Shown: piece after piece, positions 4,436-62,003 of the stretch | How positions within the stretch are numbered: the stretch's first letter is position 1 | Layout: each line of letters begins with the position of its first letter | Origin: Rhodosorus marinus CCMP1338 | Lineage: Eukaryota > Plantae > Rhodophyta | Direction of reading: 5' to 3' | NCBI GenBank assembly: GCA_029953675.1 | Contig: JAMWBK010000002.1 | Coordinates: 372,001 to 436,000 of the forward strand | Length of the DNA stretch: 64,000 nucleotides | The notes under the pieces: generated by a model | What the model saw: only the letters and a program-made list of their open reading frames with translations | Database searches by the model: none | Told to the model about the DNA's origin: nothing | Translations under genes and position numbers: made by a program

Positions 4436-5404
4436 TTTCTTCACGTAGTACCTCTCAGTATTCAAGCTTCTGCACCATGATTAACGATTACTCGAAAATT
4501 TCTGTCTCCAAAGAAGCTCTCAATACGACAGAAACTTTCCCAAACAAGTCATCGAACTCTGCCACTCTTCTTCCCGTTGGTTCTTCACCCCAAACTCAAA
4601 CGCGGCTGGATGACTCTTACAAGTCAATTTCGGTACTGGACATTCCCCCGAAAATACCTATTATTTAATTTTTAGTACTTTTTCTGACGTCAAGTGAATC
4701 CGTAAAATACGTTTACACGTCTCCCCTCTCCGTTCCCACGGTCCACGGCAATCCATTCCGGTCGTTGATTGGTCAACGAGAAAACCTTTTGGATTGAAAT
4801 CTAGGGTTTTTGATTGATGAGTATAGGTAAATGGAAGCAATAAAATTGTGTAATACAGTAATTAACGGTATAAATGCTTCAAATAAATTTAATTCTTTGC
4901 TTAAATATATTGAATACGTTCAAAATACTTAACGCGTGGATCGAGCTTGAGGAGATTGAGTAGACACTCCGCTCGGACCCACTTTCGGTGCGGTCGGAGG
5001 GTTGGGCTACTCCCCTGAATTCCAAACCTTACTGGTCTATGATACTTGGCTAGTTGAGCCATCTGATCTCGAAACCCGCTGACCTGCTCATCAGTACAGC
5101 TTTCAGCTACAGAGAAGCTTGCTTCCTAGACGACCCTCTTTGGGCATCTGTTCAAGCTCAAGAGGACTTTTGAATCTCTTGCGTCTTAACCTGGAGCAGT
5201 CTAGACGATGGTGAGCTTCTGGGTCTTTGTCCAAAGGTCCTGGTCGTTTACTCTACAAGAAGTTCAAGGCACTGAGCGTGATGTCAGGGATTTATGAACT
5301 GCCTAATCTGAACATGTTGATGGTTGCATGTTTGCATTTAAATAAGAAAGTGAAAAGGTCGCCCATTGAGCTCCGCCTCCATGGTCGGTCCATTAATTAT
5401 TCGC

Positions 5405-7327: not shown

Positions 7328-7879
7328 CAAACTCCCCTTCCCCCTCCCAAAAAAACAGCACACCACCCCCTCAAATACCTCCACCCCAACACCAACCCTC
7401 CAAGCCAACCATTAAACCCACTCCTCCCCCTCCTTCTAAACACATTCAACCCTTTAAATAAATACAATCCCAAAAACACCTTCCTACCCTCCCTCCTACA
7501 AAACCTAAAACCTGCCACAAACTCTCCCTCACCGTTATATACCTTCCTCCTCCTCCTCCCGCCCAAACATCAAACAGCAAAACCCCACTCCAGATACAAT
7601 CCCAGATATAATATGTCCATTCGAAACGCTCTCCTTCCTCAAAAACCTCTGAAACCGGCCTCAAATTTCAGACATCAATCCGTCCTCTTTCCTCCTCCGT
7701 CCCGTTCGATACAAAAAAATAAAACAAAAGGGGGAAAACCCATGCAATCGACATATAATTTGGAGTAAAAAAATTGATCGCCGGGATTGTACTAATATTT
7801 AGTACAGATACTAAAAGGATTTTTGGGTTTTTTTTATTTTTATGGTTGGTACCACTCTTGAGCGGGAGGCGTACCGGAA

Positions 7880-37256: not shown

Positions 37257-37976
37257 CTAGTAGTTCACGGGAATCTTTCCGAATCTGGCGATCGTAATGA
37301 AAAGCAGAGCGCAAAACAGCGCAGTCCAGTACAGATTGCCACCCACAGCAGTCCCGATAGAGGCCGACACCCAAACCGACGCTGCTGTCATGATTCCCTT
37401 TGCTCTTACGGCAACCCCCTTTTTCGCCTCGTGCATTTTCTTGAAGATTATGGCAGAAGCAAGAAACGTTATTCCCGCGGGGACTTGCGCAGCTGATCGA
37501 GATGCGTCATACTTCATGGAGCCGGACTCGAAAGCAAAGGTTGAGCAGATCGTGTAGCAGCATGCTCCGACAGCGACGCACGCGTTTGTGCGCAATCCTG
37601 CAGGATGATTTCCCTTTCTTCTCTCAGTACCTACTAACGCGCCGAGGGCCAGGGCAATAAAAAGTCGTCGCCCTAAGGTCGCCTCAAGCTCGGTCAGTCC
37701 AAGCAGGGACAATCGCCTCACACGAGAGCATAGCACATCACCAGCGAGTGGGTTGAGAAAAGGGTTCCCCTTAAGAACAGTTCCAATCTCGCATTCGCCG
37801 CTCAGATACGGTTCAAGGAAGCATACACAGGTTAGCACCATCCCGACCAGAGCTACCACCGCATAGATCGCGCCATCTCTTTTCGGGTTGCTGCGAAAGT
37901 TTGTCGAGTACTTCAGCCATCCTTGCACCGCGATCGTCCTCCTGGTCGACAAATCATCTCTGCCTGTACGCTCCAT
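37257..37976 (-). CDS. MgtC/SapB family membrane protein, apparently single-exon
   Basis: LGALVGTERR...AGLRTN, DASRSAAQVPAGITFLAS, GIMTAASVWVSASIGTAVG match the MgtC signature. The 239-aa ORF ends at tandem TAG TGA. Confidence 0.85.
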   Translation of the reverse strand: MERTGRDDLSTRRTIAVQGWLKYSTNFRSNPKRDGAIYAVVALVGMVLTCVCFLEPYLSGECEIGTVLKGNPFLNPLAGDVLCSRVRRLSLLGLTELEATLGRRLFIALALGALVGTERRKGNHPAGLRTNACVAVGACCYTICSTFAFESGSMKYDASRSAAQVPAGITFLASAIIFKKMHEAKKGVAVRAKGIMTAASVWVSASIGTAVGGNLYWTALFCALLFITIARFGKIPVNY

Positions 37977-38455
37977 TATTTGTATCGAAAGCAGTTCCCG
38001 ACCACCCCCTTCTCAACACACCAAAAGCGATCATAGCTTCGGCTTCCCCAAAACCCAGGCAAATCTGCTTTTAAATCGGACCAGAATCCGTTAAGTCTCA
38101 CAGATTCCGGTCCGTTGCAAATCTTTCTGGCCAATCAGCTTCTATAATAGCGCTTAGCTAGACTTGTTAACCAATAATAGATATCCAACTCCTCTAAAAC
38201 AAATACTAGCCAATGCAGAAGCTTAAAACTGTACTAGCTCGTTATCAAGAGACATCATTGGATATAACATATTTGTTTTTAGAAGATTTTCAGATGTGCT
38301 TTTACCTGTGTTCAATCGATTTGAGACTACTCACTCTTAAAACTATTCTCTTTTGCTACTCAGTACGCGTTTAGCGTGTACTATTTTTGTCATCTGCTGG
38401 TGAAGGGGAAGAAAATTATCCACGCTGTGCTGTGTGGTGGTACAAATTATGCTTT

Positions 38456-42311: not shown

Positions 42312-43116
42312 AGTGCAACCCGTCCTCGAAACACCCTATCCCTCCTCGCTCCGATCTACCCAAACCCCCTCAGAAATACCTCCTCCTCACCCACCATTAA
42401 CCTCGAATATACAAATATCCCACACACACACCGCTCCTCCTCTAAGCTCTCGCAACAAGTTCATATCCGCTCTACCCCTCCCTACCCCACCCCAAACCCC
42501 TTACCCCCTACTAACTTAGCGTCCCTCCCCCCTCCCCACCACCTTCTCAAACCCCATCCAGAATACCATTTCTCCACATTCTCCCCTGAACTCAAAAAAA
42601 TTGTACATTTGTACAACGTCCCAAAAAAGAGTCCTCTTTCTTCGTTCCCTCTCACGGGCATCAGGATGGGTAAAACCACTTTTTCTTGGCCAAGAATAAA
42701 CATCCGAAAAACTAATTCTTAAAGTATTATCAGCCATAGCAGGACAATCCATGAGGTAGAACACTAGAACGGGAGGGAGACGGGGAGGGGTAGTTGTTCA
42801 AATACGTAGAATGGAAATCGATGTGCTTTTTTTGAAGGGGTGGGGTAAAGTAGGAAGCTATTGAAATCATAAGAAGTTTAGCAGGTTTTTGAATTTTTGG
42901 AAGGGACTGCTTGATGTTTACTTGTTTGAGATCGGGCTTGTAGGGTAGGGGGGTATGAGGGTTTAGGAATTTTGGGATTGATGTGGCGACGCGGAGGGTA
43001 AATAGGGGATGATTACGGCTTCTGAGAAAGCTTGGGACGGGTTTGGTTAGGGTTGGTAGGTTGGGTGAATCGGGTGTATTGATTAGTAGATTGAGGTAAA
43101 GGTGGTATGCTTGAGG

Positions 43117-44268
43117 ATGCAACATTTTTCTGGAGCAAAGCTTGACCTTGATTGGGCTGGTTATTCGAGACTTGGGAGACTTCATGCGGACTGGGGCGAT
43201 CCGAATCAGGACTGCTACGGGGTTGAGTCTGTAGAAAGTGCAGGTGCAGTGGTGCTTGGGGTGTTTGATGGGCATGGAAAGGATGGTAGGCTGCGCTGTG
43301 CTTCTTAAAAACCCTGGTTCTGCTCTCGAATTGATTAGATGGATTGTTGTGCTCTGCTGTGTGTTTTACGCCAGGAGAGAAAATTTCTCAATTTGCAAGG
43401 ACTGAGATTCTTGAGCGGTGCAAGAGAGAACTGGAAAGTGGAAAGGGCGCATCGGAAACGCTCTCTGTGGTTTTCGGAGAGGTATCACAGTTGATCGATG
43501 GGGACGACGATTCAACCGAAAGCGGATCGACAGCAACTGTAAGGGCTTCCCACAGTTCTCTGTTTCGATTCTTCAGCTGCCTTACCCGCGTTATTGCTTC
43601 TCAGGTTTTGATTGTTCAGGACCATAGAATAGTCTCCGGATTCCTGGGAGACTCCAGCGCAAGCTTTTGTAACTTGGATGCGCAGTCTCAGGTTCTCGAC
43701 TCTGGTTTCTTCTTTGAACCCCACCGAACTTCAAATCGAAAAGAAGCGAGGCGGATTCTGGAATTTGGGTGTATAATTGAAGAGGGTTACGTGGTTGATC
43801 CAGAAAACAAGGACAACGTAAGCTTCTCGGACTGGAACTTCAAAGAGACGATCGCTCTGGGTTGCTCAGTATTGTCCTTCATGTCTGTAGGCGATATCAA
43901 TAACTAGGACTTTTGGAGACAGAAGCATGCGAGGGTGCGGTGTGAATAGCGAGGCTGAAATTTCGGAACCCCGGAGCTTTGATCAGAACAGCATAGCTCT
44001 AGTAATTGCAACGGACGGTTTATGGGACCTTCCTAAAGTAACAGCTGAGGGAGTTTCTGCAACCCTTTCGAGGTAGAGATTGTTCGCCGCTCAGAAAAAC
44101 GACAGACAGCTGCTCAAAGTGCTGACCACGTAATGAAACTTTCTCAGGATGCTGCGGAGCGGAAGTGACCTCGTAGAAATCGTGGAGCAATTCTCCAGCT
44201 TCAATGGCTACGTCCCCACTGACGACTGCACAGTTTTGATCGCGACAGTCACCGCTAAGACCCCATAG
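43117..44268 (+). CDS. Protein phosphatase 2C family protein
   Basis: NQD, GVFDGHG, SGSTA, GFLGDSSA, AISITRTFGD (after intron 43818-43890), VIATDGLWD, TDDCTVLI. Stop 44268. Confidence 0.9.
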
Positions 44269-44726
44269 AAGCAATGTAACAGTCACTGTGTGTTTGAAGT
44301 CAACTAAAAGGTAATTGTGTTTTGGACGCGATCGAAAATTTCCAACACAGAAGATATGGGACTTTCTCCAGAATGGAAGGACTAAGCACGAAATGGAAAG
44401 TGGCCTGCGGCATCCTGACAACTGGGGGTTGTGATTGTCAACTACTAGCATCAACGTTTTGTTCTGATGCACATGGCACCACTTGGGGAAAAGCTTCCAG
44501 TCGTTCATGAGGCTTTCAAGCAAATGCACTCTATTTACCAGCAAAAGCTATTAACTTTCAGCTAATAATGGCGTCCCAGCTCAACCTCTCGAGAGGGTTA
44601 AGCGTTGGAGCCTCACGAAACTATCAAAACGTACTTTCGAATGGTAAACGTAAGTCATTTGAATTGAGCTTTGTCTGCGGAAGCTCAACGGAAACGCAAT
44701 TCTATATACATACTAAGCCAGTGTGT

Positions 44727-47700
44727 TCAGCTATCGTCAATGATTGCGTCGATGTCAAACCCAAAGTTTTGCATTGCAAACTCTTCCGAAATGTCAGCGG
44801 TCGAATCTTCCATCACTGGAGCTGTTCGTAGTGGATTCACTTCTACAGCCGGCTCCGGACCGCTCGCTGAAATGAGGGGACGCTCACGAACCACTTTTGC
44901 GGGGACCTCAAAAGGCGGCAGCTTGTGTTCGCGTAGTCCTAGATACGACATATGAAATTGATGATACAGCGTTCAGAATTATGCGAAAGCTGACCAACCG
45001 GAAAAAGTGGGAAAGGCTTGGAGCATTACCTAGATCCGCCAAATGAGACGCTGGGAAGTAACCGTTATGGACGGGATATTCAATCTCATGGGTCCCTTTA
45101 GTACCCTCTCGTATGGCCGAGTCATCCATATCCATTCCCTTCAATGTTCGCTTCTTGACTCGAGCCAGCCACTCCAGGTTTGTCGAGTTTCTCTCGTTGC
45201 CGCACCGAGAACAGGCTACCAAGGTCCCACCCTTCCATAGGTAGTAATGAGTGCAGACCGCAGTCTCCGAGCTGTTGTTATCAGAACTACAGCACGAAGC
45301 AGGCATGGTTCGTTTAGAAACGTTCAAAGCGCGGGCTAGGAAAAAACCTTGGGTGGTGTTCCTCACATTCCATCCTCAAACACGTTCTGGTTGTCTTCCA
45401 AGGGAACCTCCCCTTGCTCCTCAGATGGCGCGTCCTGAGTATCCTCTTCAACCTCATCTCGATTACGTGCCTCGATCGCAGCTTTCATCGCCGCAGCCTG
45501 TGCCTCCGCTTCCGCCAATTCCTTGGCTTGTTCCTCGAGCTGAATTCGAGCTAGACTAGACTTGGCGTCCTCCAGAGCAATTATTCCCCGTCCGAGGTCA
45601 AACAACTGCTTTGAGGCTTCGGTGATTTCCCCAACGTTGAACGCTTTGCTATAGGCCTCGATCGCCGAGGCGATGCTTCTTGGCTCTTCCGTGCTAACGG
45701 CGGAGCCAATGAGGTCTGCGCCAGCGGCTCCAAGTTCCCTCGCAAGCTTTTCGGCATCAGCGACGAGCTCGGCTGAGGAATCAAACTGGCGCCCACGCTT
45801 GATCAGGTCCAGCAGTCTCCTACCATCGGGCCAAGTGGATTCCCTGTCAAACACAGAGGCGACTTGTCAGATTCTATACTTCAACGGGTTGAATTTCGAA
45901 TGTCATACCCTCCTCGCATGTCTTCAAGAACCTGTTTGTTGGAGTCAACAGCAATCTTCAACTGGTTTTTTGCTCTTTCTTCTTTCTGGATGGTGTCAAC
46001 CGCCGCTCTCACCCGCTCAGCATCATCAAGCATTCCAAGTTCTTCTAGACGAACCTTTATGCGTTGTAGAGCTGTGAGATCGTGCGCATCCACTGCCGAT
46101 TCCATTTCAGAGAGCACAAGCTCACGCTCCTCCAGCCGGAGGAGGGCAGTCTCTGCCGCAGCAACGTCTGTAACGATTATACAAAAAATCCTAGTTAGCA
46201 CTCGGCAGAACAGGACATCAACTTCTTCCGCGCAAACGGAGAGCATTATTTGGCAAGACAAACCTGATTTCAGAGCCCGAAGATTCATCTCAAGAGCTTG
46301 CTGGTGCGCATTCTTGATTGTCTCACGGTCTTCTGTTGCACAAGCTTGCCTTAACTTTTTCCTTTCGTTTTTAACCAGCTTCTGAAAGCTCTTTTTGATT
46401 CCGTTCACGGAAGCTCGTACTTCAGTATTCTTCGACGAGAAATCGACAAGCTCGAGAAGGCACCTCTCAATATCCGCTGGACTACCAGTCTTTGACGCTT
46501 TTTCCAATCTGTGTTTTAGCGAATGCACATGTTTAGTTTTCAAGTCCGCGACAGAGATACCGATCTCCGCATTTCCGATTCTGCTTGAACGTAAACCGTC
46601 ATCTTGGCACGCACCTTGCGAGAACTTCTCGTTCAGCTCGTCTTTGTTGTTCTTCAGCAGCTTTAGCAGCTTCAATCTCGTTCCTCAAGATTGTCGCTCG
46701 CTCTTTCGCATCCGTGATTCTGGACTTGTACTCGCCGTTCAACGCTTTGGAAAGAGCCCGAGTGCTCTCTTCCTCCTCATGCCACAGCGTCTCGTTTTCC
46801 AGGTCACTTACTGCTTCCACGATCTGATCCAGTTGACTCTGTTCACCATAAGAACGTTGGGGTCGCGTTGACGGAGACGGGATTCAGTACGAAGACAAGT
46901 CTAGACCTGTTTGAATTCTGTTGCGAACCTCAGCTAGGGCTGTGCTCAATTTCCGGTCTATCTCCTGACTTCGAGAGATGCGCAGAAGGAGTTCCTTCGC
47001 CAGTCTGATGCATTCATCGCTTTCATCGAGAACGTTATGAGCCTTCTTCATGGACCTTTGCAAAATACGAGGATCAGACCCTCCTTTCACCAAGTCGAGC
47101 GCATCCCGAATGAGTTTTCTAGCGTTCTCTCGTCTTAAGTTGGCCGCATCAGCATCCCTGGAAATGCTTCCAGTTTGTCAGCATGATTCTCCCATTCCGA
47201 AAACAAAAGTACCTGGGGGTGTACCTCTTCTCCTTTTTCTTCCTCTCCAAAAGTTGTTCTTCGGCCAAAACTCTTCGATTCTTCTCCAGTTCATTGCTGA
47301 GGGAGACGCTGATGGTCTGCAGAGCATGTTGCACGCTCGAATCAGCAGGTGACTGAAGGTCGTCGTCGACAGCCCCCGCACCAGCAGCCATGTGAAGCAG
47401 AACTTTGTTTGCGAACGCAATCGCTTCTTTCATCTTCGAAATCTGGTTTCAAGTTCATAGGATGCTCTCAGCTGCAGTTTCATACCGAGTGAGCAGCACT
47501 ACGTACAACTTACAGATCGGTGTTTCATAGCCTCCTCCAGCCTTTCCTTGGCCTCGTTGGCTTCCAATTCCCATTTCTTAAGGTCCCTACTTCGATGAGA
47601 ATCCCGATCATCGTCTCGCAACTCTCTGGTCCTTCTCTTCGATTCAACAGTGTAGCTGGTCGCTATGGATTCGACACTATATGAGACATCACCCGCAACG

Positions 47701-50700
47701 CCGTTGAGGACGCCTTGAAGTCCCTGGACTTTCTGCTCTTGCAACCTTTGAATCAAGAGCCTGACAATCTCCTTGTTCCCGGAATGCGCCGCGTGCTGTA
47801 CAAGAGTCCATGATCCTCTTCCAATCACCTTTTGGCGTCCAAAGGGGAAGGCGGCGCTTCAGATGCCTCGCTAAGAAAATCCAGGCGCGTCCTCTGATAA
47901 AGCTTACCTTTGGTCCTTCATCCACTATCGCTCCGTAAAATATCAGCGCGCTAGCACTCGTGACATGACCGTTTAAAACAGCGAAGTCAAGCGCTGACCA
48001 ACCTTTGCTGCTTCTTTCGTCCACATCCACGCCTCGTTCTAAAAGCAGTTCTACAACACCGTCGTGACCTAGAGTGAAAAACCGGCAACTATTCGTCAAC
48101 AACGGGAACAACCTTTGGCGCATTTAGGGGAGTCATCCAACCTTTGGATGCAGCGAGATGAAGCGGTGAAAGGGAATCCATCATCTCGTAGTCTTTGTTA
48201 ATCAAAACTTTGATGTTAGCGCGACAAGTCAGCTCAGTGTTCGCATCTAGGAGAGCCTTTACGCATTCTACGTCTCCTTCATCTGCGGCTATAAACAGCA
48301 ACGGGCTGCTTCCGGGTACGGAGAGTTTCGCTCCTCCGTGTATAAGCAGACGGACGCACCTGATCGGCGGGTATTGTAGTAGAAAAATTCAGGCTTCCAC
48401 TGAAGTAGATCTGTGATCAGATTGAGGGCATGCGTAATGCGACATTACCTGGCGTGTCTTCTCTGCACAGCATAGCATATGGGGGTAGTTCCAGTGACAT
48501 TTTCAGCATTAGCATCAGCACCCGCATCAATCAACACGCTCACCACCGCATCGTGACCATTCAGTGCAGCCAGGTGCAGAGGTGTCAACTTCTGCTCATC
48601 TTCATGCATGGTACGTGCCCCTATTGAACAGAACGACCAACAATCACCCGCCATTGGCTTAGAAACAAAGCACTTGATGATGATGCGAACAGAAGAATTA
48701 ACCTACCCTCACGCAGAAGAAGCCGAACAACATTTGCGTGGCCTCTCTGGGACGCAAGACACAACGGCGTTTGTCTCTTCGATGACGGTACATCAATTAG
48801 ACACCCCTGGTCGATAAGGAACTTGCACACCGCCACGGATCCTGTGCTCGCAGCAAGATGTAGGGCAGTCACCAGATCCGCACACTTGGTGTTCACGGAA
48901 GCCCCATTTTCACGCAGAATCTTGCAGCATCTGAGGTTGCCCTTGTGCGCTGCCCATGCCAACGCAGTTAACCTGTGAATCACATCCATCAATCGCCATT
49001 TGTTGTCAAACTTCTGCAAGGGGTTTTCTGACGGCATTCTTGATTCCGAACCTTTTCTTGCCATAGACCATGTCGAGGTCCGGCTGGCACCTCCTCACAA
49101 TAAGTTCAAGACAATCCGCCTTCCCTCCTTGCGCCGCAAGCACAAAAGCAGGCAATGAGCTAGTTAAGGCTGCTTCCGGTGGAAGCAGATTAGAGTATAC
49201 ACCAGACGGAGCCTACGATAAACACGACAAGCGTCTGTTCAGAAAATGTTCGATAGGTCTTTGCGATGAAAACCCGTACCTGAATAGCCGATACTCTTTG
49301 GCTCCACGTCATTCTCGAAAGCAGAACAGCGAGGCAGTGCCTGTGTCCAAGTCTCACGGCCCTCCCAGTTTTGATAGAAAGTACAGTTCTGGTTTTCCCG
49401 ACTATATCATTTGCACCGCAGCATTCACACATATCGAGGTCGCTTGCATCTTTGCCACTCTAAGACCACGAGATCAACATGCTAGCTAGTGTGAGAATAC
49501 TGCGTCGAACTGTTTAATGGGTTGCCGCTGTACATTAAGCAATACCTCTTCCCGCGGGTTCTTTGGGCTCCTCTTGTCCGGCAATTTTGACAAGTCAGAG
49601 CACGCAGAACAGCTGCACTTTTCCACAGCAGAAATATTTAAATCGAATAGTGAGTCATCGTCGTCCTCCTCATCCTCTTCTCCAAGGTCTGTGTCAGCAG
49701 AAGAGGAGCTCTCTCCGGAAGGCGAAGAAATTGACAAGATATGGTGCTGGCCCAACTCGCTTTCGATACTCTCAGCACCGAAGAAAGACGTGAGCAACGC
49801 CCTGGCCCTCATCCGAATATCAAAATTTGAGTTATGTGTTAATGCCTCAACCCTCTCCACACCATAAGAATTCACGACAACCGCAGCGTATTTGTTCAGC
49901 CTGGAAAGCGGACAAAATTTGCAAAAAGCCCCAGGTCAACAAGAACTTCTGTGGATGTCCGGACCTAGCCGAAATGTTCTCGAGCAATAGGAAGGGACTT
50001 CGAACCTCCGCCCAGTTTGATGAGCTACAAACTCTCCTACAGCTAACACATTCCGCAAGCCCTTCAATGCTACTTCGGCTATGGTCCCACAGCCTTTCCA
50101 ATTCACGTCGAGTTCTTTCGTACAGCTGAGCAGACTGCACAACGCCCTAACACAACCTGAGGCGGAAAAAGCGAGTTGCTTTTAATTCACCTCCAGGAAA
50201 GACGATAATCGTTCAGGTGCGTACCTTGTTCTGCTAGGTAGTCAATCTGCTTTTCATCGCGATTTGCGGTTACGTTGTAAAGGACCCAAGTAGCGTCCTC
50301 TCGACAAGCAGCATCCTGGGACTCGAGAAGTCTAACCAGAGTTGGGAGCGAATTTGACGCGCGGTTTAGCTCGCTTTCACCGACCATTGACGCTTACTGG
50401 CTGTGAGGGAGAGGTACCTCAAGAGATACGGAAGAATTCCTGCGTCGATGACGTCTTGAACCTGATGAGCAGATTCTGAAATATTTGATATTATCCAACA
50501 GCATTCCTTCCTAATGCTTCGTTCGTCGCAGGTCAATAGGGCGCGTAGACTTGGGAGAACGTTGCAGTCAATGATCACCTACAGCAAGATGCTCAGGTGA
50601 GATGTCGTCACGCGCGAGCCCAAAGGCAACTGAGAGTCTTCCTTTCAGACTGGGAATACCTGAGTCTGTCTATCGTCGCCGCAAGCAATATTTCCAATAA

Positions 50701-51172
50701 CCTGTAAGGCAGCACTCTGTACGGAAACAGGTACCCGGAACTCGAACACTCCATTCCTCTTTTCAACAGGCTCAAGTAAATGGACGAGCTTTGGCACGAC
50801 CGCAGCCTCCAGAATCGACTGAATTCTATCATTCTGTATCCCCTCACCGAATAGTTGGCATAGATCCAAGCACGACTCCTTCAGAATCTGCTCATCTTTG
50901 TGTTCATCCAACAGGCTCGCCAATGCCTTGGCCTTCGCTCGAACCTAGCACGCTCGATAATCCCGTACGTTAGCATCCTACAATCAACGACCAATATTAT
51001 TTCCTGACATAGTCCGATTTCGAATCAGGTGCATTTGATTTAGGGAACTCACCTGTTGGAGTGGAACACCAGGGACTGACGCGGCGTGCGCTACAGCAGC
51101 AGCCGCCTCGGCAACTGAAACCTTCTCCTCGGCCGAGGAGACATCACTGCTTTTAGAAGCTTGTTGGCGCAT
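44727..51172 (-). CDS. Large multi-exon protein: importin-alpha-like ARM repeats + Cys-rich linker + ankyrin repeats + coiled coil + C-terminal Cys/His motif
   Basis: ARM exons (QSAALQVIGNIACGDDRQTQ, IRKECCWIISNI, REDATWVLYN, NKYA...VERVEAL) join in frame to ankyrin exons (LTALAWAAHKG, TALHLAASTG, TPLCLASQRGH, TPLHLAALNGH, SPLHLAASKG) via GT-AG introns 49545-49460, 49279-49213 and 49051-48973. The terminal exon ends at 44727. Some internal junctions were not checked. Confidence 0.8.
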
Positions 51173-53111
51173 GAAACGTGTCCAACCCCGTCAGGAGTAA
51201 AGAAGAGACGCTCCTGAGGCGATCCTTCTCCACTTCCCGAGCTTAAATTCCCGGCCTTCTTATCCACCTGTACCCAGCATCAAAACCCTCCCCAATCTTT
51301 ACAGAAACAGCAACCAAGAAGACTAAAAGGTAGTGATAACCTTTAACCTCCTTCCAACCGGTGAAACTGCCGAGATCCCGAAGTCCTGCATCTTCAAACT
51401 CCGATATCTCAGAAACGGCGGCCTCTGTAAACCGCAGCCAAGCGAAAACAAAGTGTTAGATAGAAACTGGACATCAGTTTCATCATTTCGTATTTCTCGA
51501 AGACGATTAAAAATGAAAGGCAAAGAGGCCGCGATAAACCAACGCCAACGAACAATAGAATCTCAGACAGTCTACTTACTCCCATAATCCGGAACCGCTC
51601 ACTCCCTCCGCACGGGGAATTTCCAAACGTGACAGCATCAATAGCCACCCGAACACAACTTGTAGAGGTTCAGGCACCGCGGGACCAAAAAAAAAAAAAA
51701 AAATAGCTACGGCTTTGCTTTTCACTAAACCCGTTCCCAAAAAGGCTACAAACCGAATTCTAAACAACCCCAAATCGATACCGGTCGTTTACTACCCGTC
51801 CCAGACCTCTTCCCTCGTCCGCGGTCCCCTTCTCCCCACCCCCCCCTTGTAGCCCTCCCTTTGTCACCTTGCTCCAACCCTTTCGAGCATCAAAAATTCG
51901 TCAAGCGCAGGACAAGAAAATCTAATTATGCGAATCACCAAAAAAAAAATTAGGTCAAGATCAAAGATCCTCAAATTTTGACCCCATCAACGTAAAAAAC
52001 CCAATTAATACGGAAAAACGGTATCCCGTTGTTGCACCTCCCTCGCGCCTTCAATTCCACGAAATTTTCCCGTTGAAACCCCCGGCCCCCCCCCCCAACT
52101 ACCTGAGAGTGACGTCAACAGGTAACATATGTCCGAATGCTAGAACTTCTTTAGGTGTTATTAGACCAACATTTTGCTGGGGCAAGCCCACCCCCTCCCT
52201 TTTGTCTTCCGGGACATCTGAACATGCTTGTAAAAATATCAATAAGTCGTAATTAAGACTGGGACAAGAGCGTACCACCCAAAGATCAGGAATTCGTTCT
52301 ATTTCTTATCTAGAATATCCCAGATCTAGCATATTTAAGTATCTCTTAAATTAAGATTGATTCGGCAAAATGTCGTTTCCATTAGGGAATCGTTGGTCAA
52401 AAGTTCAGTACGTCTTTCTTTTTCTGGTCGATTTACTTGTCTATTCGTAGTGGGACAAAGATCTGGAAAGAAGAGACACTATTTTGGGAATTGAGAAGCC
52501 AAAGTTTTTGGCAGAATTCTAACACGGACAAGGGCTGTCCCTAAAAATCCGGAGAAAATTGGGGCCCCTGCCGGTTAGAGGGCAAAACATTCCTAATTCA
52601 ACTTCGTCTTCAGGTTTTCCATCAATTTTAGAGCTCGGGGGTATTTTTGTTTTTCTTTTCTATGTGAACATTTGACTGTATTACAAATGTTTTTTAGACG
52701 CTAATATATAGTTAATATTCCTATGTATTTGGATGTGGCAGGAAAACTTATGAGAATTTCAAAGATGTTTGTGGAATGGCTCAAGAATATTGAGTCAATG
52801 GTGAAATCATTTAGCAGCTTTGATTGTAAATTAGAGGATCCATGCCCAGGATCCGTCCTTCCGGGTCGTCAGTGGCCGTTTATGGTCACAGATCTGGTTC
52901 TGGACTACCAAACAGAAGAAAAAAGAAGAAGAAATGGGTTCTATACCTGAGCTGTTATCAAAATACGCTTTACCGTGAATTAACAGATGAGACTGCATGA
53001 CTGCAGCTGTTTTCAGGATACTGTATCACCGCATCCATATTGATCGCCTCTGATGCGGCTCTCGTCATCATTTCGGCAACTCGCACTTGATCATTTAAAC
53101 ATTTTGTCTGT

Positions 53112-53184
53112 ACGAATTCCATGATAAGCTAGCTACCACACTCCAGCCACGAATTCCATGATAAGCTAGCTTCTCCAGCCACGA
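53112..53184. repeat. Short tandem duplication (37-bp period)
   Basis: acgaattccatgataagctagct at 53112-53134 and 53149-53171, each followed (after 6 nt and 1 nt) by ctccagccacga. Confidence 0.85.
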
Positions 53185-54020
53185 CCTGATCGTGGCTGCA
53201 CTTGAATTTCTCCACGGGGTACGCTTCAGGCCTCAGCCCGGTCGGTCGGGGTGATGCTTCATTGAGGGCGAACGTCTTCTGTGTTGAGTCAAGCACTGCT
53301 CTCCTCAGCCTTGACCCATGAATCCCCTCTACATGGCTCAGCGATGCCGCTTCTGCTACGGCGAACACTTTGAAGCTATACAAGTGTTTTCATGTCGACA
53401 GCTCCCCATTGAGGAACCCCCTCTCACTGTCCAACACGTGCGAGACATCCGCTATCACGTACCATGACAATACATCTGCGGCAGGCCACAAAAACGTACC
53501 TGAAGGCCTCCACGTTCGGAGACAAGGAAACCTTCGCCGCATAGGCCGCTCGCCGCACCGATGGAATCTCCCACCCATTAAGCTCTCTGACTCCCTGAGA
53601 TGATCCACGTAGGCAGAGCATATCCGGAGGGCATCTGTAAGGGAGGACTGTCCCGAGCCACAATACTCGTCGTGGTGACTAATTAAAAAAAAACAAGAAA
53701 CTACAACGAAAAGCAATGATTCGATCAAAAACATGAAATCCAATAATATTTTAAGAGTTCAGAATTTTATTAAACGATTATTGGGTAATATACGTTTACA
53801 AGGTGAGTTGTCAATCTATTATTGGTTGAAGTAGATTTCAAGAGGAAGGTGGGTTTTTTGTCGTTAACGGATCAGAAGTTTTGCACTTTTTGGGTGAGGT
53901 TTTCAGTAATCCTGTATTTTACACGCAGTAGAGAATTCAGGTTGGTAGTGAGGGAGAGGGACTGCTGCGCTCCATGACAGAGCACGACGCGTTATGAGAA
54001 GTACTCTGAAGAAAGGAACG

Positions 54021-55866
54021 ATGAAAAAATTTAACAAAATCGCTGACCAAGCGAAGAAACAATTTCAAGCTGATCATAGCAACGAAAAAAGGTAGGAACA
54101 TGTGCCGCTATGCTTTTTTGTCCTGGACAACTCACTCTCTTTCAGGTTTTCGCTGAACTAGTCCATGAGCTCACGCCCTCCGTTTGGTCTCTAGGGGTGC
54201 TGTCTACTATGAACCAGACACGGAGCTTAGAAGTATAAAGGACCAGGATGTTCCAGGAGGCTTGAAGCTCGAAGTCATGTTAGAGGCCACCCGATTGGCC
54301 AACTTTTGTTATCTGGAAAAGTCGGGATGCTACTGGAAATCCAGCAAACGGGAGAAAAAGGACTTTGCCGCTATAAAGCCCGAGCACCTGTCGATTGGTC
54401 TCATGGTTGCCATGGGCAGGTTTCCAGATCTCTCAACCGGAATGAATTTGAAGCTTATCAGTAATGAGCATGACCAAGAGTTCGACGAAGGAAAGGGCCA
54501 TCTCTATTCAGGAATTATCAAAGAATGGAGGACCGACACGGATTTGGTGATTCTCCACAACCCGGATGAAAAAATTATTGCAATAGCGTGGCGTGGGACG
54601 GAGTCTGGATCTGATGTGCGAGTCGACCTGAACGCGCTGTCCGCGGAGTGGCCGTACACTTCGGGTCCAAAGCTACACGTATCAACTGGGTTCAAGAGTG
54701 CGCATGATTCTGTTATTGAGCCTATAAAACAAACGCTGAAGGCCATGTGGAAGTCAGGGTCCTACGAGCGGATACTGGTTTGCGGGCATAGTCTTGGCGG
54801 TGCGCTAGCTCATTTGCATGCACACGCATTGTCATACATTCTCGAGGAGGAACTTAGGAAGTCTCCCCTGCCTCCAGAGGAAAGGCTCATGTGCTACACC
54901 ATTGGAGCTCCGAAAGCTGGGAATGCGGAGTTCTTGAAGGACTACACTACGCGGGTTGGGCACTCGTACAGACTCGTCAATGATCACGATATTGTTCCGC
55001 GGCTACCAGTGCCGAGGAGGAATCACGTTGGTGTTCCTATTATCGCAAACGAAGAGCATTTCTATATAAACCCGTCCTTTGAGACGAAGAGAAGATTTGA
55101 GTCGGAGAGCCAGCAATCCGAACGCATCTCGGATCACATGCCGCCAAACTATCTTAAGGTCGTTCTAAGCCACTACGCCAGGCAGCAGATGACGGAGCTT
55201 GCTGATAGGTTGATACTGGACGCGTGGACTGCTTTCGTAACTTGCACAGATGTAACGAAGACGACAGCTTTGGAAGTACAAAAACCCCGTGGCGACGATC
55301 CAAAGCTTATGTCTGTAAAACCAGTTACTGTTCGCGAGCCTCACCAAGATAGCATGAAGAAGATCCTCGTTGAAGCTTTTGGATCAGAACTGGCGAATCA
55401 GGACGTGCTCGACCACTTGCTGTTGTACGCAAGGAAGTGCCTCGAGATCAATATCTTTCGTCCGTGGGAAAAGCCCTTTGATGAAGACGTTGTTGACCTG
55501 AGCGCATTCCGTATCGCAGTTTTCGATCTTATTGGAAATCCAGACAGTCTGGGAAGGCTAAGGGCTCTCGAAACCGCGCGCCTCCGTGACATGTTCGACC
55601 TCATCGACACTGATGGGGACGGCTTGATTTCTGCAGAAGAGTATGTCCAGGCGCATAGGAAGATACAGCCAGAGTCTGCGCCCGAAATTGAAGCGAAAGG
55701 AGCTGTGAAAATGCTTCATGACCAGTACAAAATGGCGTACAATGAGTACAACCTCGAATATTCGGAGGAGTTTGCCCCGACTGATATTAGCTTCGAGGAG
55801 TTCAAAATGGCTCCCCAGGTGCGGAATGGGGACGCTTTGAACATCATCCAGAAACTTAAAGCGTAG
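54021..55866 (+). CDS. Class 3 lipase with C-terminal EF-hand
   Basis: AWRGT, nucleophile elbow ILVCGHSLGG, YTIGAPKAGN, RLVNDHDIVPRLP, SDHMPPNY, and EF-hand DLIDTDGDGLISAEEY. First exon from ATG 54021 joins through phase-2 intron 54092-54194. Confidence 0.9.
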
Positions 55867-56290
55867 AGACTTTGTTCGTTGAAGACAGTCTTTATCAAAT
55901 AAAGGCAGAGTTTTCGTCCCAATAGTCGCCTCATTCGATTTGGGAGCATTCACGAGTTGGGTATCGCTCAGAAGGAGAACCGTTCAGCGAATCCTATATG
56001 GAACCCCTAGTGCGTCTTCATTCTTCAAGACTAAATGAAACAACAGCGGGGTTATACGACGAGGGCAAAGAAGCGACTGGAGGATGAAGCTCACGATTGT
56101 TGTGGTTGGTAGGGCGGCTACTCCTCAAGGCGAACGCCTTCAGGCGTTCAAGCGGCCAGCAGAAAGTCGAAGATCAATGCTACCTTCAAAGTTTTCGAAG
56201 TTGTATGTCCGGTGGAGAAAGCGTCGCTGAGGTAAATAGGCCAAGCAGCAGCCAGGCCAATGGTATCGGGTTCACGGCGACACAGACGGG

Positions 56291-56486
56291 GACAATGGTA
56301 TTAACGATAAACCGGGCCAATGGATCGCTCCTCGAATGTTCCTCTTAAGGCAATCTGCGCGTCGAAAGCACCAACTGCCGTAAGCTGTCCAGACAATGGT
56401 ATTATCGATAAACCGGGACAATGGATCGCTCCTCGAATGTTCCTCTTAAGGCAATCTGCCCGTCGAAATTGCCGTAAACTGTCCAG
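56291..56486. repeat. Two-copy tandem repeat, ~101-bp period
   Basis: gacaatggtatta.cgataaaccggg.caatggatcgctcctcgaatgttcctcttaaggcaatctgc.cgtcgaaa...gccgtaa.ctgtccag starts at 56291 and at 56392. Confidence 0.9.
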
Positions 56487-56717
56487 TTATCGGGTCAAGC
56501 AGTCCTCAAAGGCCAAAGCTCTCTGGTCGATTGGCCAATCATTCCTCCGGAGACTTGGAATTTGAGACGGGTTCTCCGTACCAGGCTCCTGCTGGATTGC
56601 TACTTTACCTGAGCACCAACACAAGGCATCAAAATCACCTTCTCCGCGGGCCAGAACGACTTTGATGCCCAATGTTCCTCAAAACCTGGCTTTGCAGGCA
56701 AAAAGCACTGCACTCAT

Positions 56718-57081
56718 TTGGGCCAACTAATCTTGTAAGCCAATGTTCTCTTCCCAACGGGCCAGACTGAACATCGAAGACCAACGCTCTCCAGTAAGCG
56801 GGCCTGACTTAATATCGAAGACCAATGTTCTCCGATAAACGGGCCAGACTGAATATCGAAGACCAATGTTACTAATGAAAACCCTGCCCTAATTTTCGCC
56901 CCACTCTATTTGGCCAACCGTAAGCCAATGTTCTCAATAGGACTGCAACAGTTTCTAGCCCCCAATTTTCTTTAGTCAACGGGCCAGACTTACTTTGAGG
57001 ACCAATGTTTTCCGCTCAACGGGCCAGACTGACTGTAGAATACCAATGTTACCTATGAAAGCCTCTGCCCCTATTTTCGCT
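56718..57081. repeat. Degenerate ~41-bp minisatellite with higher-order duplication
   Basis: Five units (a)acgggcc(a/t)gact-N10-(g/t)accaa(t/c)g at ~56756, 56797, 56838, 56978 and 57018. Two blocks each begin ggccaac...taagccaatgttctc and end atgaaa...ctgccc...attttcgc. Confidence 0.85.
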
Positions 57082-57439
57082 CGATGAAACGATTGCTCCG
57101 GTCAATGAAATCCGATGTGGCAATGAGAGCTTGAAACTGGTGACACACATATATTGGAGAAAGACAGCATCCAAGGATGCTTGACAGGAGTCTAGTTTTG
57201 TTTTAAAAGGGGCTGGATAACTTTCTGAACAACCTTGGACCCAGGTTCCTGTCACAGACGATTGTTCCTCTTGAAGAAAGCGCCCGTGTGGGTGAGGGAA
57301 AGCTTTACCTTGTCTTCTTCGACAGAGTCGAGCCAGAAGAGGAAGGGTTTTGAGGCAAGCGTGATAGAGAGGGAGGTTTTTCGGGGGCAGGGTTTAAGCC
57401 TGGACTTGTAAGTTGGTGTTGTAGTTTTTTTGAGGCGAC

Positions 57440-59921
57440 ATGTCGTCTCTCATTCAATTGATAGACTTTGAAGAGCATTTCAATGATGATGTTGAAGCGT
57501 TTCTGGAGACCAGCAATGTGCTGGAAAGGCGAGACAAGTTTCATGTGGTGTCCATCATTGGACCTCAGAGCAGTGGCAAGTCAACGCTTCTCAACATCCT
57601 CTTCAATTTGAACTTTCAGACGATGGACGCAGGGAGTGGTAGATATCAGGTTTGGCAACGCCTTACTGAATGAAAGTGAGGGCGATGACTCAGCCATGCT
57701 GACTACTTTATTCCGATTTCCTCGCTAGGTAACTCAAGGGGTCTGGATGGGCTACGATCAAGAGTCGCATACCGTTGTTCTGGACTTGGAGGGTACAGAT
57801 TCGCGAGAACGGGGTGAATTTGCAGGAGCGTACGAGCGAAAATCGGCTCTGTTCGCACTGGCATTGAGTGAAATTCTCATGGTTAACATATGGTATGAAT
57901 TTAACGGAGATCAAATTCTTTTGGACCTCTGCTTAGGCGATACGACCGTCTAAAATCATATCTGCTATTGTACCTCATGTAATAGGACTCAGGACATAGG
58001 TCGTCTAAACGCGTCGAATCTTCTACTGTTGAAAAATATTCTGGAACTCCATGTTCAGCTGTTCATCACTGCGCAGAAGTCGAGTGAGAAGATTCCGTTC
58101 AAGACGAAACTCATGTTCATCCTTCGAGACCATGTCAGTTCGCCTCTATCAAAACTGACAGAAGTCCTGACGAATGACGTTAAGAAGGTCTGGGGCAGCA
58201 TCGAGAAGCCAGAGGAAATGAAGAATTCGTTACTAGAGGAATTTTTTGACTTGGACTTCTATTCTTTGCCGCACAAGAACCTCAAACCGGAGGAATTTGC
58301 GGAAGCGGCTTCAGAAATGCAAGCAAAGTTCAGGTCTGGGGCGTTTTTGGATTGTGATGTTTACAACAGGAAGGTCGAAGCGGATGAGCTGGCTCTGTAC
58401 GGGGAGAACATTTGGAATACAATCGCTTCCAACAGGGAACTTGATCTGCCATCACAGCGAGAGATGGTCTCAATAGTACGCTGTGACCAGGCTTTGGATG
58501 AGGTCGGCCAAACATTAGCAGCTGAGCTTTCTGCTCTGGAACAAGAGTTAAAGCCAATCCAGGCGCTTGATGAACGCAGTTCGGATTTGATGCAAAGGGC
58601 GAAGACCATATTCCGCGAGAAGACAACTCGACAAATACAGAGCGTGGTTCTCCGCAAGGAGGCGAGTCTTGCGGAAAATCTTAGCCAGGTCCTCACAAAG
58701 CTGATGCGGGACCAGATGGAAACTGTCAACAAAACAGAGCTTAACAAGTTCCGAGAAAAACTAGACGTGCTTGGTAGCGCTGAAACTCCGTGGACTGCGT
58801 TTGAAAGCCAGACAGTTGAGGCCTTTCGTCTCGCATCATCTGAGTTTGATAAATGGTGCCGGGCTCCTGACGCGATCCCTCAAATATCCGAAGGGGTAAG
58901 CACGAAGCGGGCCGATCTTTTGAACGATCTCGAGAACGAAGTAGAGATTACTCGACAGGAGGTGGTGGAGAAGGGTCGGGATGCCCTTCTGCAAACTTTT
59001 CAACAAATCGTGCGAAAGAAAGTTGTTCCTGTTATTGACTTGGGGTTGAACGCTGAGTGTTGGCCCGGAGCTTTGGAGGAGGTGAAGCATGCGATCGCCA
59101 CAGTAGACGATCAGTGCACGATGATGCTGGGGTCCGACGGCGTTGGACTTCATGGGGATGAGCTCGAGCTTGCCAGGGTTAGGGTGCGAGAAGCTTGCTT
59201 GTCATGGCTTTTTGGGGACCTGCATAAACTGATTGGTGGGTCTGAAGGGGTCTTACGGAGAATGAAACAACGCTTCAACCAACTTTTCCGGTTCGACGAG
59301 AGCGGCAACCCTCGCGTGTGGGCCCCGAGGGACGACGTTACCACCATATTCGATGCTGCACAGAAAGGGGCTTCCGATATGGGCGATATGTTGGCGACCA
59401 TCTCCCTAGGCGAATATGGGTCTCAGAATGTAGTCGACAACAACTCTCTGCGTGAGTTGAAGCAGCAGTTAGACAGCGATGCAGCCGTTGCATTTGTAGA
59501 CGCAAGGCACGCTCAGGAAATGGCACGAATGAAAACCAAGGTTCCGATGTGGGCGGTCGTGCTTGTTGGTGTCCTTGGTTTTGATGAGGCCAAGATGGTT
59601 TTGAAGAGACCAGCACTAATTTTCTTGTTCCTAATCGCATTTGTGCTAATATACTTTGCCTACCTCATCCGCGTACATGAGATGGTTTGGGAACCTCTTC
59701 GCGACTGGGCTGCTCCTTACCTCCAGATATTGAAAGCAAGACTCGAGGAGTGGATTGAGACTAATGAGAACAACGGCAACACCATCTACAGCGGCACACC
59801 TGCGAAGGCAAGCGAGCGTACTGACTCCGTTCTAACCGGAGCTTCGGTTGTCGAATCCTCCGCGGTCCTCGAGACGTCAAGCGAGAAGCAATCTCTTGCA
59901 TCGAACAAGAAGGAAGATTAA
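57440..59921 (+). CDS. SEY1: SEY1/RHD3 atlastin-like ER fusion GTPase
   Basis: [65 protein letters not shown]-terminal TM hairpin [16 protein letters not shown]. Confidence 0.95.
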
Positions 59922-62003
59922 CAAGCAATCCACCTGCGCTTTGCGTGTGTAGTTATACCGAAAGCTTACGGGATGTTTTGACCTTCCACGACGAATGCCG
60001 TTGGGGCGGGGGGGCGCAGCCGAGCATTGGAACTCCGTATATCAAATGTTCTCTTCAGTTGCTAAGCAAAGAGTACTCCGGGGATCGGTGATTACGATGA
60101 AGCGCTTGTAACCCAGATCAATTTTGAATATGTAAGTAAACACAAGCCTCACGGCGCTTTAGTTATCTGAGACCGGAAAGTTTGGTCTAAGGCATTCCCA
60201 GCTTCCTTGCTTCCCGCGCGAGCTCAATCGGGCGAAATATCCAGCCATGAGCTTGCTTTTGCCTTCTACGATATTCTTTGTTTTTCTTCCGAAATATTTT
60301 CATCTCTTAAAACAGTATTGGCTGATGCCGTGCAATGCATCCAATTATGCATCAATAATTGGGTAAATATTAAATTAATTTTACTATTTTTATGAGACTT
60401 ACATAATTTTCGGCCAAGCAATTCAGCAAGAACTGCTTCAGCTCGCGAACGGGGAAAACATCGATTCAAATATTAAGTAATTATTTTATCATTTTAAGAC
60501 AAGAGTTCAGGGACTTAGTACCCCTTCCACAAGCTCACCTTTGTCAAAAATATGTATATTTATTTTTATTAATAGATTAAATTAGGGCGAGTTTTCCGTA
60601 CTAGAGCTTCCCTGGAGCAAATTAATATTACATATTTGACTATTATTTAATATTCAATAAATAATAGGCCAATGACAACTCGAGCGTTGCAAGTAAAAGC
60701 GGCCTGGATTGGGTCCTCTGTTGGGGAAGCTTCGGGAGCGCAGCTGGCAATGATAGAACTCCAGGCGCAAAGACGGAAATACATGGCAGGCAGAGCCTCG
60801 ATTGTGAAAGCGTATCTGCGCTTCAGTTCCAATTGCAGCTGTAGTTCAACAGCTTTTTCGAAACGTACGACAGCCATTTTTTTGCACCGAAGAGAAAAAG
60901 AACACACCTCCCTCATCGCGCATGATCTTCCCATTCCGTCCATGCTGAAGTTTGACGCAGGATCTACGGCCAGCTTGGACAATGTAACTTGTGAGGCTGT
61001 TCGCTGAACTTCTCAGCCATTAGCTGCAGCAATCCCCGAAAATGAATGCTCAACGAGAATGGATGTCAGCAACTCCGAAAGTTTTCTTGCAAAAGTCATC
61101 GAAGACAAGCCTATCCCGGTGCACATCTGCCCTCGTCCAGTGCCCCACCAGCTAACAAGCTACACTCGATTGCCAAGGCTGCGCTATAAAAGGCAAAACC
61201 ATTGCAAAAGGAGCCTTCTAACAAGCGACAGTTGGATGTGGGCAAGGACGATGCGATATTCCTCAGTTCACTCTGAAGATCATATCCAGAGACCATGACT
61301 AGTTCCGTGGCCAGTAAACAAAAAAATTCCCCCCATCAAACACCATCCTTTCGCTTCCAATCGGCGACAGCGCTCTTCATTCAAGCATCAATGCCCCCTT
61401 CCTTAACGAATAGAAATAAAACATTAAAAAACATTATGTCTAAAAAAAAAATTGAGTCGACGGGGAACTCCCTTCATATTTGCCCCCAGACGTACAGATT
61501 GGTGGACAAGGATTAAGTTCTAATATCCATCTAGGAAAAACTGCCAGACTAGAACTCACACGTACACTTAATTTAGATGAAATCTCTGATCTACGGTCAC
61601 TCTCAGAATCAAATATTTTGTAATTTATATTCATTATTTTCGAATAATATGTAGTGACTGTTAAGTATTGTTTTGTCGTAATTTAGTGACAATTATTAGA
61701 CTATATTTAAAAGGTGGTTCTTAATATGGTTCCCCGAACCGAGTAAGTTTTCATTTTTTTTGGCCGTGGGGGATGGTGGGGGTGGAGGCGAAATGGAAAG
61801 ATGGGTTTGGTTGGTGAAAATTGAGATCCTTGATGTTTGAGGAATTGAAATCGTTCTTTTTGGGGGTATGGACGGGAGATTTAGTTTTCTGTTAGTGTGG
61901 AGGTGAAAGGGATGGGTGTGGGGGGTATAAAGAGGTAGGGTAGAAGTTTCTTATTGCACAGACGGAGGGGCGGCTGGAACGGCATCCTGGGTAGAATATT
62001 GTG

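Follow-up and report, generated by a model that had tools for sequence, protein, structure and literature searches.

The 64,000-nucleotide stretch of Rhodosorus marinus CCMP1338 DNA considered here (GenBank assembly GCA_029953675.1, contig JAMWBK010000002.1, positions 372,001 to 436,000 of the forward strand; below, the window) is eukaryotic, with about 48% G+C and short introns, and carries on its minus strand a large gene whose product joins the second half of an importin-alpha-type armadillo (ARM) domain to an ankyrin (ANK) solenoid, a long charged region and conserved C-terminal modules (Table 1). The gene model was built by hand from the three-frame translation and then refined with database proteins; its 20 introns measure 65-108 nt. 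The ATG at 51172 is preceded six codons (18 nt) upstream by an in-frame TGA at 51193-51191, and the stop codon occupies 44729-44727, so that the ends 51172 and 44727 given in a preliminary description of this DNA are right. That description had also proposed that an importin-like open reading frame (ORF) and several ankyrin ORFs can be joined in frame by three introns. The ORFs exist as listed: 49486..49875 comprises the end of the ARM part and an acidic linker, and 49190..49432, 49006..49155 and 48621..49064 are the first ankyrin exons, all on the minus strand. The introns 49545-49460, 49279-49213 and 49051-48973 were reproduced to the base, being GT...AG introns of 86, 67 and 79 nt that keep the frame and give the peptide joins ...PKNPREE/SGKDASDLDMCECCG..., ...SAIQ/APSG... 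and ...YGKKR/LTALAW... When intron 6, which lies at the ARM/ANK junction, is retained, the frame stops at 49488-49486 and the next ATG, at 49432, follows 53 bp on, close to the gap of about 54 bp first estimated for separate genes.

Table 1. Features of the ARM-ANK gene and of its neighbours in the window (positions are those of the window; AF2, AlphaFold2; pLDDT, predicted local distance difference test; IBB, importin-beta-binding domain).
Feature	Position	Strand	Content	Basis
Whole coding region	44727..51172	(-)	21 exons, 20 GT-AG introns, 4773-nt coding sequence, one terminal stop, 1590 residues	
Exons 1-7	51172-51053, 50944-50660, 50578-50418, 50331-50225, 50156-50006, 49900-49546, 49459-49280	(-)		
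Exons 8-14	49212-49052, 48972-48707, 48620-48449, 48359-48142, 48068-47908, 47828-47514, 47442-47225	(-)		
Exons 15-21	47157-46929, 46838-46615, 46508-46264, 46167-45909, 45843-45367, 45286-45030, 44938-44727	(-)		
Exon 1	51053..51172	(-)	residues 1-40; start codon and variable disordered N-terminus, not IBB	
Importin-alpha-type ARM repeats 5-10	49765..50944	(-)	residues 41-320; exons 2-6	phmmer, Pfam, AF2, Foldseek
Minor-site ladder codons	50274..50692	(-)	N125 50692-50690, W163 50497-50495, N167 50485-50483, W204 50288-50286, N208 50276-50274	
Acidic linker	49630..49761	(-)	residues 322-365; disordered, Ser/Asp/Glu-rich	pLDDT 25-36
First Cys cluster	49582..49623	(-)	residues 368-381; CxCxxCxDxSxL, with no further conserved element up to the junction intron	
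Intron 6	49460..49545	(-)	ARM/ANK junction; 86 nt, GTATTG...TTAG, in-frame TAG 49488-49486 inside	
Second Cys cluster	49418..49429	(-)	residues 404-407; CECC (CxFC in most homologues)	C404 invariant, C407 at least 90% conserved
Ankyrin solenoid	47721..49405	(-)	residues 412-815; 11 helix-pair repeats, degenerate N-cap GRAVRLGHRHCLAVLLSRM	Pfam, AF2, Foldseek
Charged Pro/Gly-poor region, probably helical	45471..47633	(-)	residues 845-1400	composition, periodicity, conserved columns
In-frame GT..AG segment	45929..46009	(-)	81 nt; coding here (27 residues, RAAVDTIQKEERAKNQLKIAVDSNKQV), intron in the deposited model	
CxH...CxxC mini-domain, putative zinc-binding	45121..45258	(-)	residues 1445-1490; includes helix ending RVKKRT	
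Acidic-aromatic C-terminal peptide	44730..44792	(-)	residues 1570-1590; ISEEFAMQNFGFDIDAIIDDS	conserved
Rrp5-like S1/OB domains	107-1984	(-)		Pfam
CLC chloride channel	31285-32031	(+)		Pfam
MgtC	37260-38012	(-)		Pfam
Class-3 lipase with EF-hand	54169-55863	(+)		Pfam
RHD3/Sey1 GTPase	57954-59918	(+)		Pfam
M16 peptidase C-domain	63122-64000	(+)		Pfam

The ARM and ANK parts belong to one gene, as the preliminary description had supposed, and four lines of evidence agree on this. The deposited protein (P0001, hypothetical protein NDN08_007456 [Rhodosorus marinus], 1563 residues) has the same start, ARM/ANK join and end as the model and is identical to it save for 27 residues that are extra in the model. 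In an MMETSP transcriptome, a complete ORF (P0002) that is 64% identical has its first Met at the corresponding position and is colinear with the R. marinus protein throughout, from MR.QA... to ...FGFDIDAI.DS; its 90% cluster includes a Bangiopsis sp. CCMP1999 transcript. The orthologue in Cyanidioschyzon merolae, CMP188C, is a 2406-codon ORF on AP006498.2 that runs without interruption and holds both Arm and Ank. Moreover, conserved motifs abut intron 6 on both sides, CxCxxCxDxSxL before it and CxFC followed by (G)RAVRLGHxHCLxxLLSRMxW after it. Arm and Ank matches also occurred together in all 22 homologues scanned with Pfam. The 27 residues in question are encoded by 45929..46009 and are colinear with the P0002 transcript and with the family consensus; this segment is therefore probably coding, and the deposited protein would be 27 residues too short through one false intron.

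The armadillo part begins about halfway through importin-alpha, at ARM5. In phmmer comparisons with importin-alpha chains (E ~1e-58), residues 34-322 align from chain residue ~196-240 to the end of ARM10, with human alpha-5 (6wx9_A) matched over 196-443 at 163 bits and rice importin-alpha (4b8j_A) over 237-499 of 528. Pfam gave three Arm matches and Arm_3 below threshold (24-25 bits against a cut-off of 28.8) in the R. marinus protein, and Arm_3, the atypical ARM10, was matched at E<=0.01 in 19 of the 22 homologues, at best with 5.7e-11. The AF2 model has a pLDDT of about 90 across the ARM domain and below 50 at residues 1-34, a disordered N-terminus. By Foldseek, it superposes on importin-alpha structures, rice complexes with a nuclear localization signal (NLS) in the minor site included, at 2.2-2.5 Å root-mean-square deviation (rmsd) over about 283 columns with 34-36% identity, and both the sequence alignment and the superposition extend to the end of ARM10. 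The lack of an IBB, claimed early on, is borne out, Pfam having found none in the R. marinus protein and none among the 22 homologues; the same is true of the repeats ARM1-4 with the major NLS site. Every stop-to-stop segment of the window, in six frames, was searched without filters with a hidden Markov model profile of the family ARM region; the profile detected the five exons at 50944-49489 only and no ARM segment in 50945-64000 on either strand. An upstream exon supplying the IBB and ARM1-4 was thus looked for across the window and not found. Because the two defining features of importin-alpha, the IBB and a set of ten ARM repeats that includes ARM2-4 with the major NLS site, are lacking in the predicted protein, it is not filed as an importin-alpha, and the absent IBB argues against binding to importin-beta.

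Two other readings of the gene structure have to be weighed. The locus could hold two adjacent genes, an ARM-only gene that stops with the TAG at 49486 and an ankyrin/helical gene starting from the ATG at 49432, since read-through of the donor at 49545 leaves the frame open to the stop and the ATG comes 53 bp later, and since ORF calling in another red-algal assembly gave separate ARM and ANK products. However, 53 bp could not accommodate both a 3' end and a promoter, intron 6 resembles the remaining 19 introns, the conserved motifs reach right up to it from either side, the complete transcript ORFs of relatives cover both halves, and CMP188C is a single uninterrupted ORF; the split models also share order and strand, as is expected when a gene with introns is ORF-called. 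Two genes are accordingly very improbable. That divided locus (L002, 598-7858 of GCA_016292395.1, JADWZK010031854.1) is annotated as ARM 1671-2411, ANK 2861-5002 and tail 4954-7032 and 7010-7858, all on one strand, and the split looks like an annotation artefact of ORF calling across introns or frameshifts. Splitting of this kind would account for ARM-only and ANK-only fragments in databases; an ARM-only query of a word-indexed protein database returned three fragments. The other reading, that exons for an IBB and ARM1-4 were missed further upstream and the gene encodes a full importin-alpha, draws on the general chance of a missed 5' exon and on the poor conservation of the N-terminal 40 residues. 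It is opposed by the empty ARM profile between 50945 and 64000 on both strands, by the in-frame stop 18 nt 5' of the ATG, by the lipase gene on the opposite strand at 54169, which is the next gene upstream, and by the homologues, all 22 of which begin at ARM5 without an IBB, even where the transcript is complete or, as in C. merolae, the gene has no introns, so that its chance is close to nil. One gene with the ARM5-10 start, and its assignment to the family described below, may be taken as close to certain.

The family appears to be confined to red algae, a conclusion that is well supported by the searches. A full-length database search found about 40 proteins of 1183-2510 residues that share the Arm+Ank layout and are colinear over the full length, including relatives in Galdieria, C. 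merolae, Cyanidiococcus, Chondrus and Agarophyton. Because this search relies on shared words, a junction profile (A2) covering ARM10, the linker and the first two ankyrin repeats was built and run against 1.84 billion protein representatives. Eleven clusters matched it strongly (E 5e-124 to 3e-49), and the weaker matches covered the ankyrin end only or the ARM10 end only. Cluster look-ups added Pyropia/Neopyropia yezoensis (3056 residues), Gracilaria changii, G. domingensis and Bangiopsis. All named members are red algae, from Cyanidiophyceae, Stylonematophyceae, Bangiophyceae and Florideophyceae, and the R. marinus protein carries every element of the family, namely ARM5-10, the Cys-cluster linker, the ANK solenoid, the helical region, the CxH...CxxC module and the NFGFDIDAI tail. 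The phylum-wide conservation and the conserved C-terminal modules are additions to the preliminary description. In databases, members are entered as 'hypothetical protein' or 'ankyrin repeat protein', and the family has never been described.

Within the ARM half, the part that is kept best is the minor NLS-binding site. The segments KECCWIISNI and REDATWVLYN, singled out at the start as carrying its Trp/Asn (W/N) ladder, lie at residues 159-168 and 199-208; the ladder itself is retained and invariant across the phylum, with G129, D131, T134, E160, S166 and D201 located among its residues N125-N208. In the alignment to importin-alpha-5, ALQVIGNIACGDDRQTQ is paired with ALRAVGNIVTGDDIQTQ, IRKECCWIISNISES with IKKEACWTISNITAG and CREDATWVLYNVTAN with TRKEAAWAITNATSG. 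Minor-site contacts in mouse importin-alpha are made by N403, W399 and E396 of Arm8, by W357, N361, S360 and E354 of Arm7, and by N319, G323, D325, T328 and V321 (PMC3946659). Their counterparts in the red-algal protein are, in the same order, N208, W204 and D201; W163, N167, S166 and E160; and N125, G129, D131, T134 and A127. The groove thus matches the mouse contacts at every position but two, at which V is conservatively replaced by A and E by D; the numbering was carried from alpha-5 to mouse through shared motifs, with no direct alignment to the mouse chain, and agrees with the 1ejl_I coordinates. The 22 homologues represent four red-algal classes; all of them have K159, E160, W163, S166, N167, E200, D201, W204 and N208, and conservation of at least 90% is seen at N125, G129, D131 and T134. 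These residues correspond to the P1'/P2' contacts given in PMC3946659. From Cyanidiales to Florideophyceae, there is either no change or a conservative replacement at the groove positions by which importin-alpha grips the 'KR' of minor-site ligands, among them the Nup50/Nup2 N-terminus, TPX2 and KRx[W/F/Y] NLSs.

The region between the two solenoids is variable in length and conserved in a few elements. The linker ranges from about 45 to about 250 residues among homologues and retains an acidic core, ...SDSDPEDDDSDSD... In Florideophyceae and Bangiophyceae (P0010, P0023, P0028, P0195), it comprises 150-250 residues of His-, Pro- or Ala-rich low complexity and keeps the core ...SSTDSDPEDDDSDSDL(I/L)PPPPAPCxCxLCxDxSPLxxRRPR, of which the poly-Pro and RRPR portions are reduced in Rhodosorus. 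A basic motif in the linker (DKRSPK here, RRPRGK in seaweeds) was considered as an IBB-like cis ligand and set aside, as it is absent from P0002 (DKLPSG) and its model confidence is low. The first Cys cluster, with conservation of at least 90% at C370 and C372 and a pLDDT that rises to about 75, aligns in the non-cyanidialean sequences of the junction alignment (A2) and is divergent in the three Cyanidiales-like ones. The ankyrin part follows the second cluster and is matched by Pfam Ank, Ank_2 and Ank_4 at E 1e-35 to 1e-55, with Ank and Ank_2 at 1e-46 to 1e-55. AF2, applied to residues 1-815 with a 22-sequence alignment, gave a mean pLDDT of 81 and a predicted template modelling score of 0.73, with disorder only at the N-terminus and in the linker; it shows eleven ankyrin helix pairs at pLDDT 85-97 and a beta-hairpin insert at residues 700-716. 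In Foldseek, this part fits segments of 12 repeats from ankyrin-B and ankyrin-1 with an rmsd of about 4.2 Å over about 385 columns. The motif RAVRLGHxHC was rejected as a zinc motif, the model showing it as a helix pair of the degenerate first ankyrin repeat.

C-terminal to the ankyrin repeats, a coiled coil had been proposed, and this claim holds in part. Residues 845-1400 contain hardly any Pro or Gly and are 35-54% charged, which makes a coiled coil plausible; the heptad signal, however, is patchy, the 3.5-residue periodicity reaching z 2-3 only within 1121-1200 and 1345-1400. The conserved blocks of the region include ...KNERKKLRQA... and ...WPDGRRL.DL... Blocks of the form 'D...L..A(I/L)..A...L' recur along the region (47633-45471), and a profile-profile comparison of its two halves for an internal repeat gave a probability of only 15%. 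No part of the protein outside the repeats, be it linker, helical region or C-terminus, had a credible Pfam match. The last two exons encode the CxH...CxxC mini-domain, a basic patch RVK(K/R)R after it and the tail. In the mini-domain, the C, H, C and C are invariant, as is the R of the basic patch, and AF2 predicts, at pLDDT 94-96, a fold of three strands plus one helix. Its model had no significant fold match in the PDB, the best being BED fingers and ribosomal zinc ribbons, all at E>1, and the module may be an undescribed small zinc-binding domain. When its 48-column alignment was run against the word-indexed protein database, zero matches were returned, the family itself included, a result that reflects the weakness of the index for short queries and not absence of the motif. 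The protein ends in ...EEFA..NFGFDIDAI(V/I)DD, whose F, F-G-F and I are shared without exception by the 21 sequences compared. This motif occurs from Cyanidiales to Florideophyceae, and AF2 models it as two short helices at pLDDT 73-76.

Because the IBB and ARM1-4 are absent, the protein has neither an importin-beta-binding domain nor a major NLS site. From this, from the kept minor-site groove and from the linked ANK and helical parts, we infer a scaffold that acts independently of importin-beta. In this proposal, the ARM half would still bind a short extended basic peptide of the KR type, the ankyrin solenoid would bind a second partner, the helical region would serve as a spacer and probably as a dimeriser, and the two Cys/His clusters would be zinc-stabilised modules, the whole forming a large tether between a KR-motif protein and the partner held by the ankyrin repeats. 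By itself, this mechanism is possible but falls short of probable; the gene structure and family taken together with it make up an account that is moderately probable. Several points weigh against the mechanism. The conservation of the W/N ladder might be due in part to the fold and not to a ligand, and dimerisation by the helical region is an assumption because the coiled-coil periodicity is weak. Zinc binding at both Cys/His clusters is suggested by the Cys/His pattern alone. AF2 predicts a helix at the C-terminal RVKKRT, a conformation ill-suited to an extended NLS-type ligand; residues 381-400 have a pLDDT of 40-53 in the AF2 model, where the linker basic motif is not confidently placed and gives no sign of being a cis ligand. 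Finally, a literature search for CMP188C found no paper on it.

Three other functions compete with the peptide-binding scaffold. The ARM half could be a structural solenoid only, with peptide binding lost, the ladder kept for stability and function residing in the ANK and C-terminal modules; ARM repeats are common as structural scaffolds, and AF2 docks none of the protein's own basic motifs confidently. Yet the full W/N pair occurs just in ARM7 and ARM8 of the six repeats, with the Asn alone in ARM6, as in importin-alpha, and the ladder consists of surface groove residues that are invariant family-wide along with the acidic E160 and D201. Such a distribution suggests that selection has acted on a binding site and not on the hydrophobic core, and makes a purely structural ARM half unlikely. 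The preliminary description had favoured NLS masking or cytoplasmic retention by an IκB-like logic, in which the ARM groove holds the NLS of a nuclear protein and the ANK/helical body keeps this bound protein non-nuclear until release. The conserved minor-site groove is consistent with this, as is the consideration that without an IBB a bound NLS cannot pass to importin-beta, and a large protein with a long helical region could be anchored. Nothing specific to IκB was seen beyond the ankyrin repeats, however, and in IκB these repeats do the masking, as opposed to the ARM groove here; presence in every red alga, the reduced Cyanidiales included, fits a core structural role at least equally well. 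Retention is thus quite unlikely.

In the third alternative, a scaffold at the nuclear pore or envelope or at the spindle pole, ARM5-10 docks the helical protein on a Nup50/Nup2-like or TPX2-like KR motif. The minor site is bound by TPX2, through KRKH, and by Nup50/Nup2, which also contact the side of Arm9-10 (PMC3946659). The retained fragment covers the repeats used by both, which renders a pore, envelope or spindle role as plausible as cytoplasmic retention; ARM5-10 is kept with its minor-site residues invariant, and the size and the long helical region recall basket or tether proteins. This proposal is purely inferential and is rated as rather unlikely. To our knowledge, red algae have neither centrioles nor flagella. 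A more general form of the scaffold idea, that red algae keep an importin-alpha-derived, importin-beta-independent receptor whose groove would read KR motifs for non-transport anchoring of an ANK/helical scaffold, is a tentative suggestion, with doubt outweighing confidence. Such a receptor may read motifs of the Nup50/Nup2 or TPX2 type or basic patches within the protein itself, and the sites of anchoring may be the pore, the envelope or the spindle pole.

Several known systems resemble the protein in part. Importin-alpha (KPNA1-7, Srp1/Kap60, rice Imp-alpha1a) has in common with it the homology from ARM5 to ARM10, the minor site and an acidic stretch after ARM10; the red-algal protein differs in having no IBB or ARM1-4 and about 1270 further residues after the ARM part, comprising ANK, helix and C-terminal modules. 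The designed DARPin-Armadillo fusions (PDB 6sa8, 6sa7) likewise are single chains that combine an ankyrin-repeat binder with a peptide-binding armadillo module, and 6sa8_A, a ring-like fusion, is the best PDB match in sequence and in fold for residues 1-815 (51172-47721). These fusions are synthetic, rigid crystallisation scaffolds of consensus repeats, whereas the red-algal solenoids are natural, with a disordered acidic linker and a Cys cluster between them. The combination of ankyrin and armadillo repeats chosen by engineers is hence already natural in red algae. Among animal proteins, ANKRD35 (P0047, a weak repeat-based match) has an ankyrin block followed by a long helical/coiled-coil region, and UACA, RAI14 and ANKRD24/26 are also animal ankyrin-plus-coiled-coil proteins; such proteins share generic ankyrin homology only and are without the ARM part, the CxH...CxxC module and the NFGFDIDAI tail. 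ANKAR is an uncharacterised natural vertebrate protein with ankyrin and armadillo repeats, in which the ankyrin repeats precede ARM repeats that are not known to be importin-alpha-like; it was not recovered in the full-length or junction-profile searches, and a literature search gave incidental mentions only. Inhibitors of the IκB / NF-κB p105 type offer the functional analogy of an ankyrin-containing protein that governs whether an NLS is accessible. In IκB, ankyrin repeats mask the NLS of a Rel protein, whereas the candidate NLS surface in the red-algal protein is the ARM groove, and generic repeats alone are in common.

The domains of the protein are ordinary, and their combination is undescribed in the literature and databases searched. 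It is conserved from Cyanidioschyzon, which has one of the smallest genomes among free-living eukaryotes, to the seaweeds Pyropia, Chondrus and Gracilaria, and a large protein kept for so long in one phylum is probably central to red-algal cell biology. With importin-alpha's minor site split from the remaining adaptor, the family offers a natural test of that site on its own, and the scaffold reading, if true, would represent a natural co-option of an NLS-binding groove into a structural protein. C. merolae is genetically tractable, so that the function of CMP188C is directly approachable. For annotation, the deposited one-gene model is confirmed, one probable false intron is corrected, and the splitting of the gene by pipelines is explained.

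The neighbouring genes identified by Pfam (Table 1) have no obvious link to the ARM-ANK gene. Directly downstream of its 3' end, ORFs at 43100-44550 on both strands had no Pfam match; a PP2C phosphatase on the plus strand at 43100-44100, suggested by motifs such as GVFDGHG and ATDGLWD, found no support when its short ORFs were compared with Pfam. Upstream, a run of about 16 T (51715-51690, minus strand) lies about 520 bp 5' of the start codon, in the 3-kb divergent intergenic region that the gene has in common with the lipase gene.

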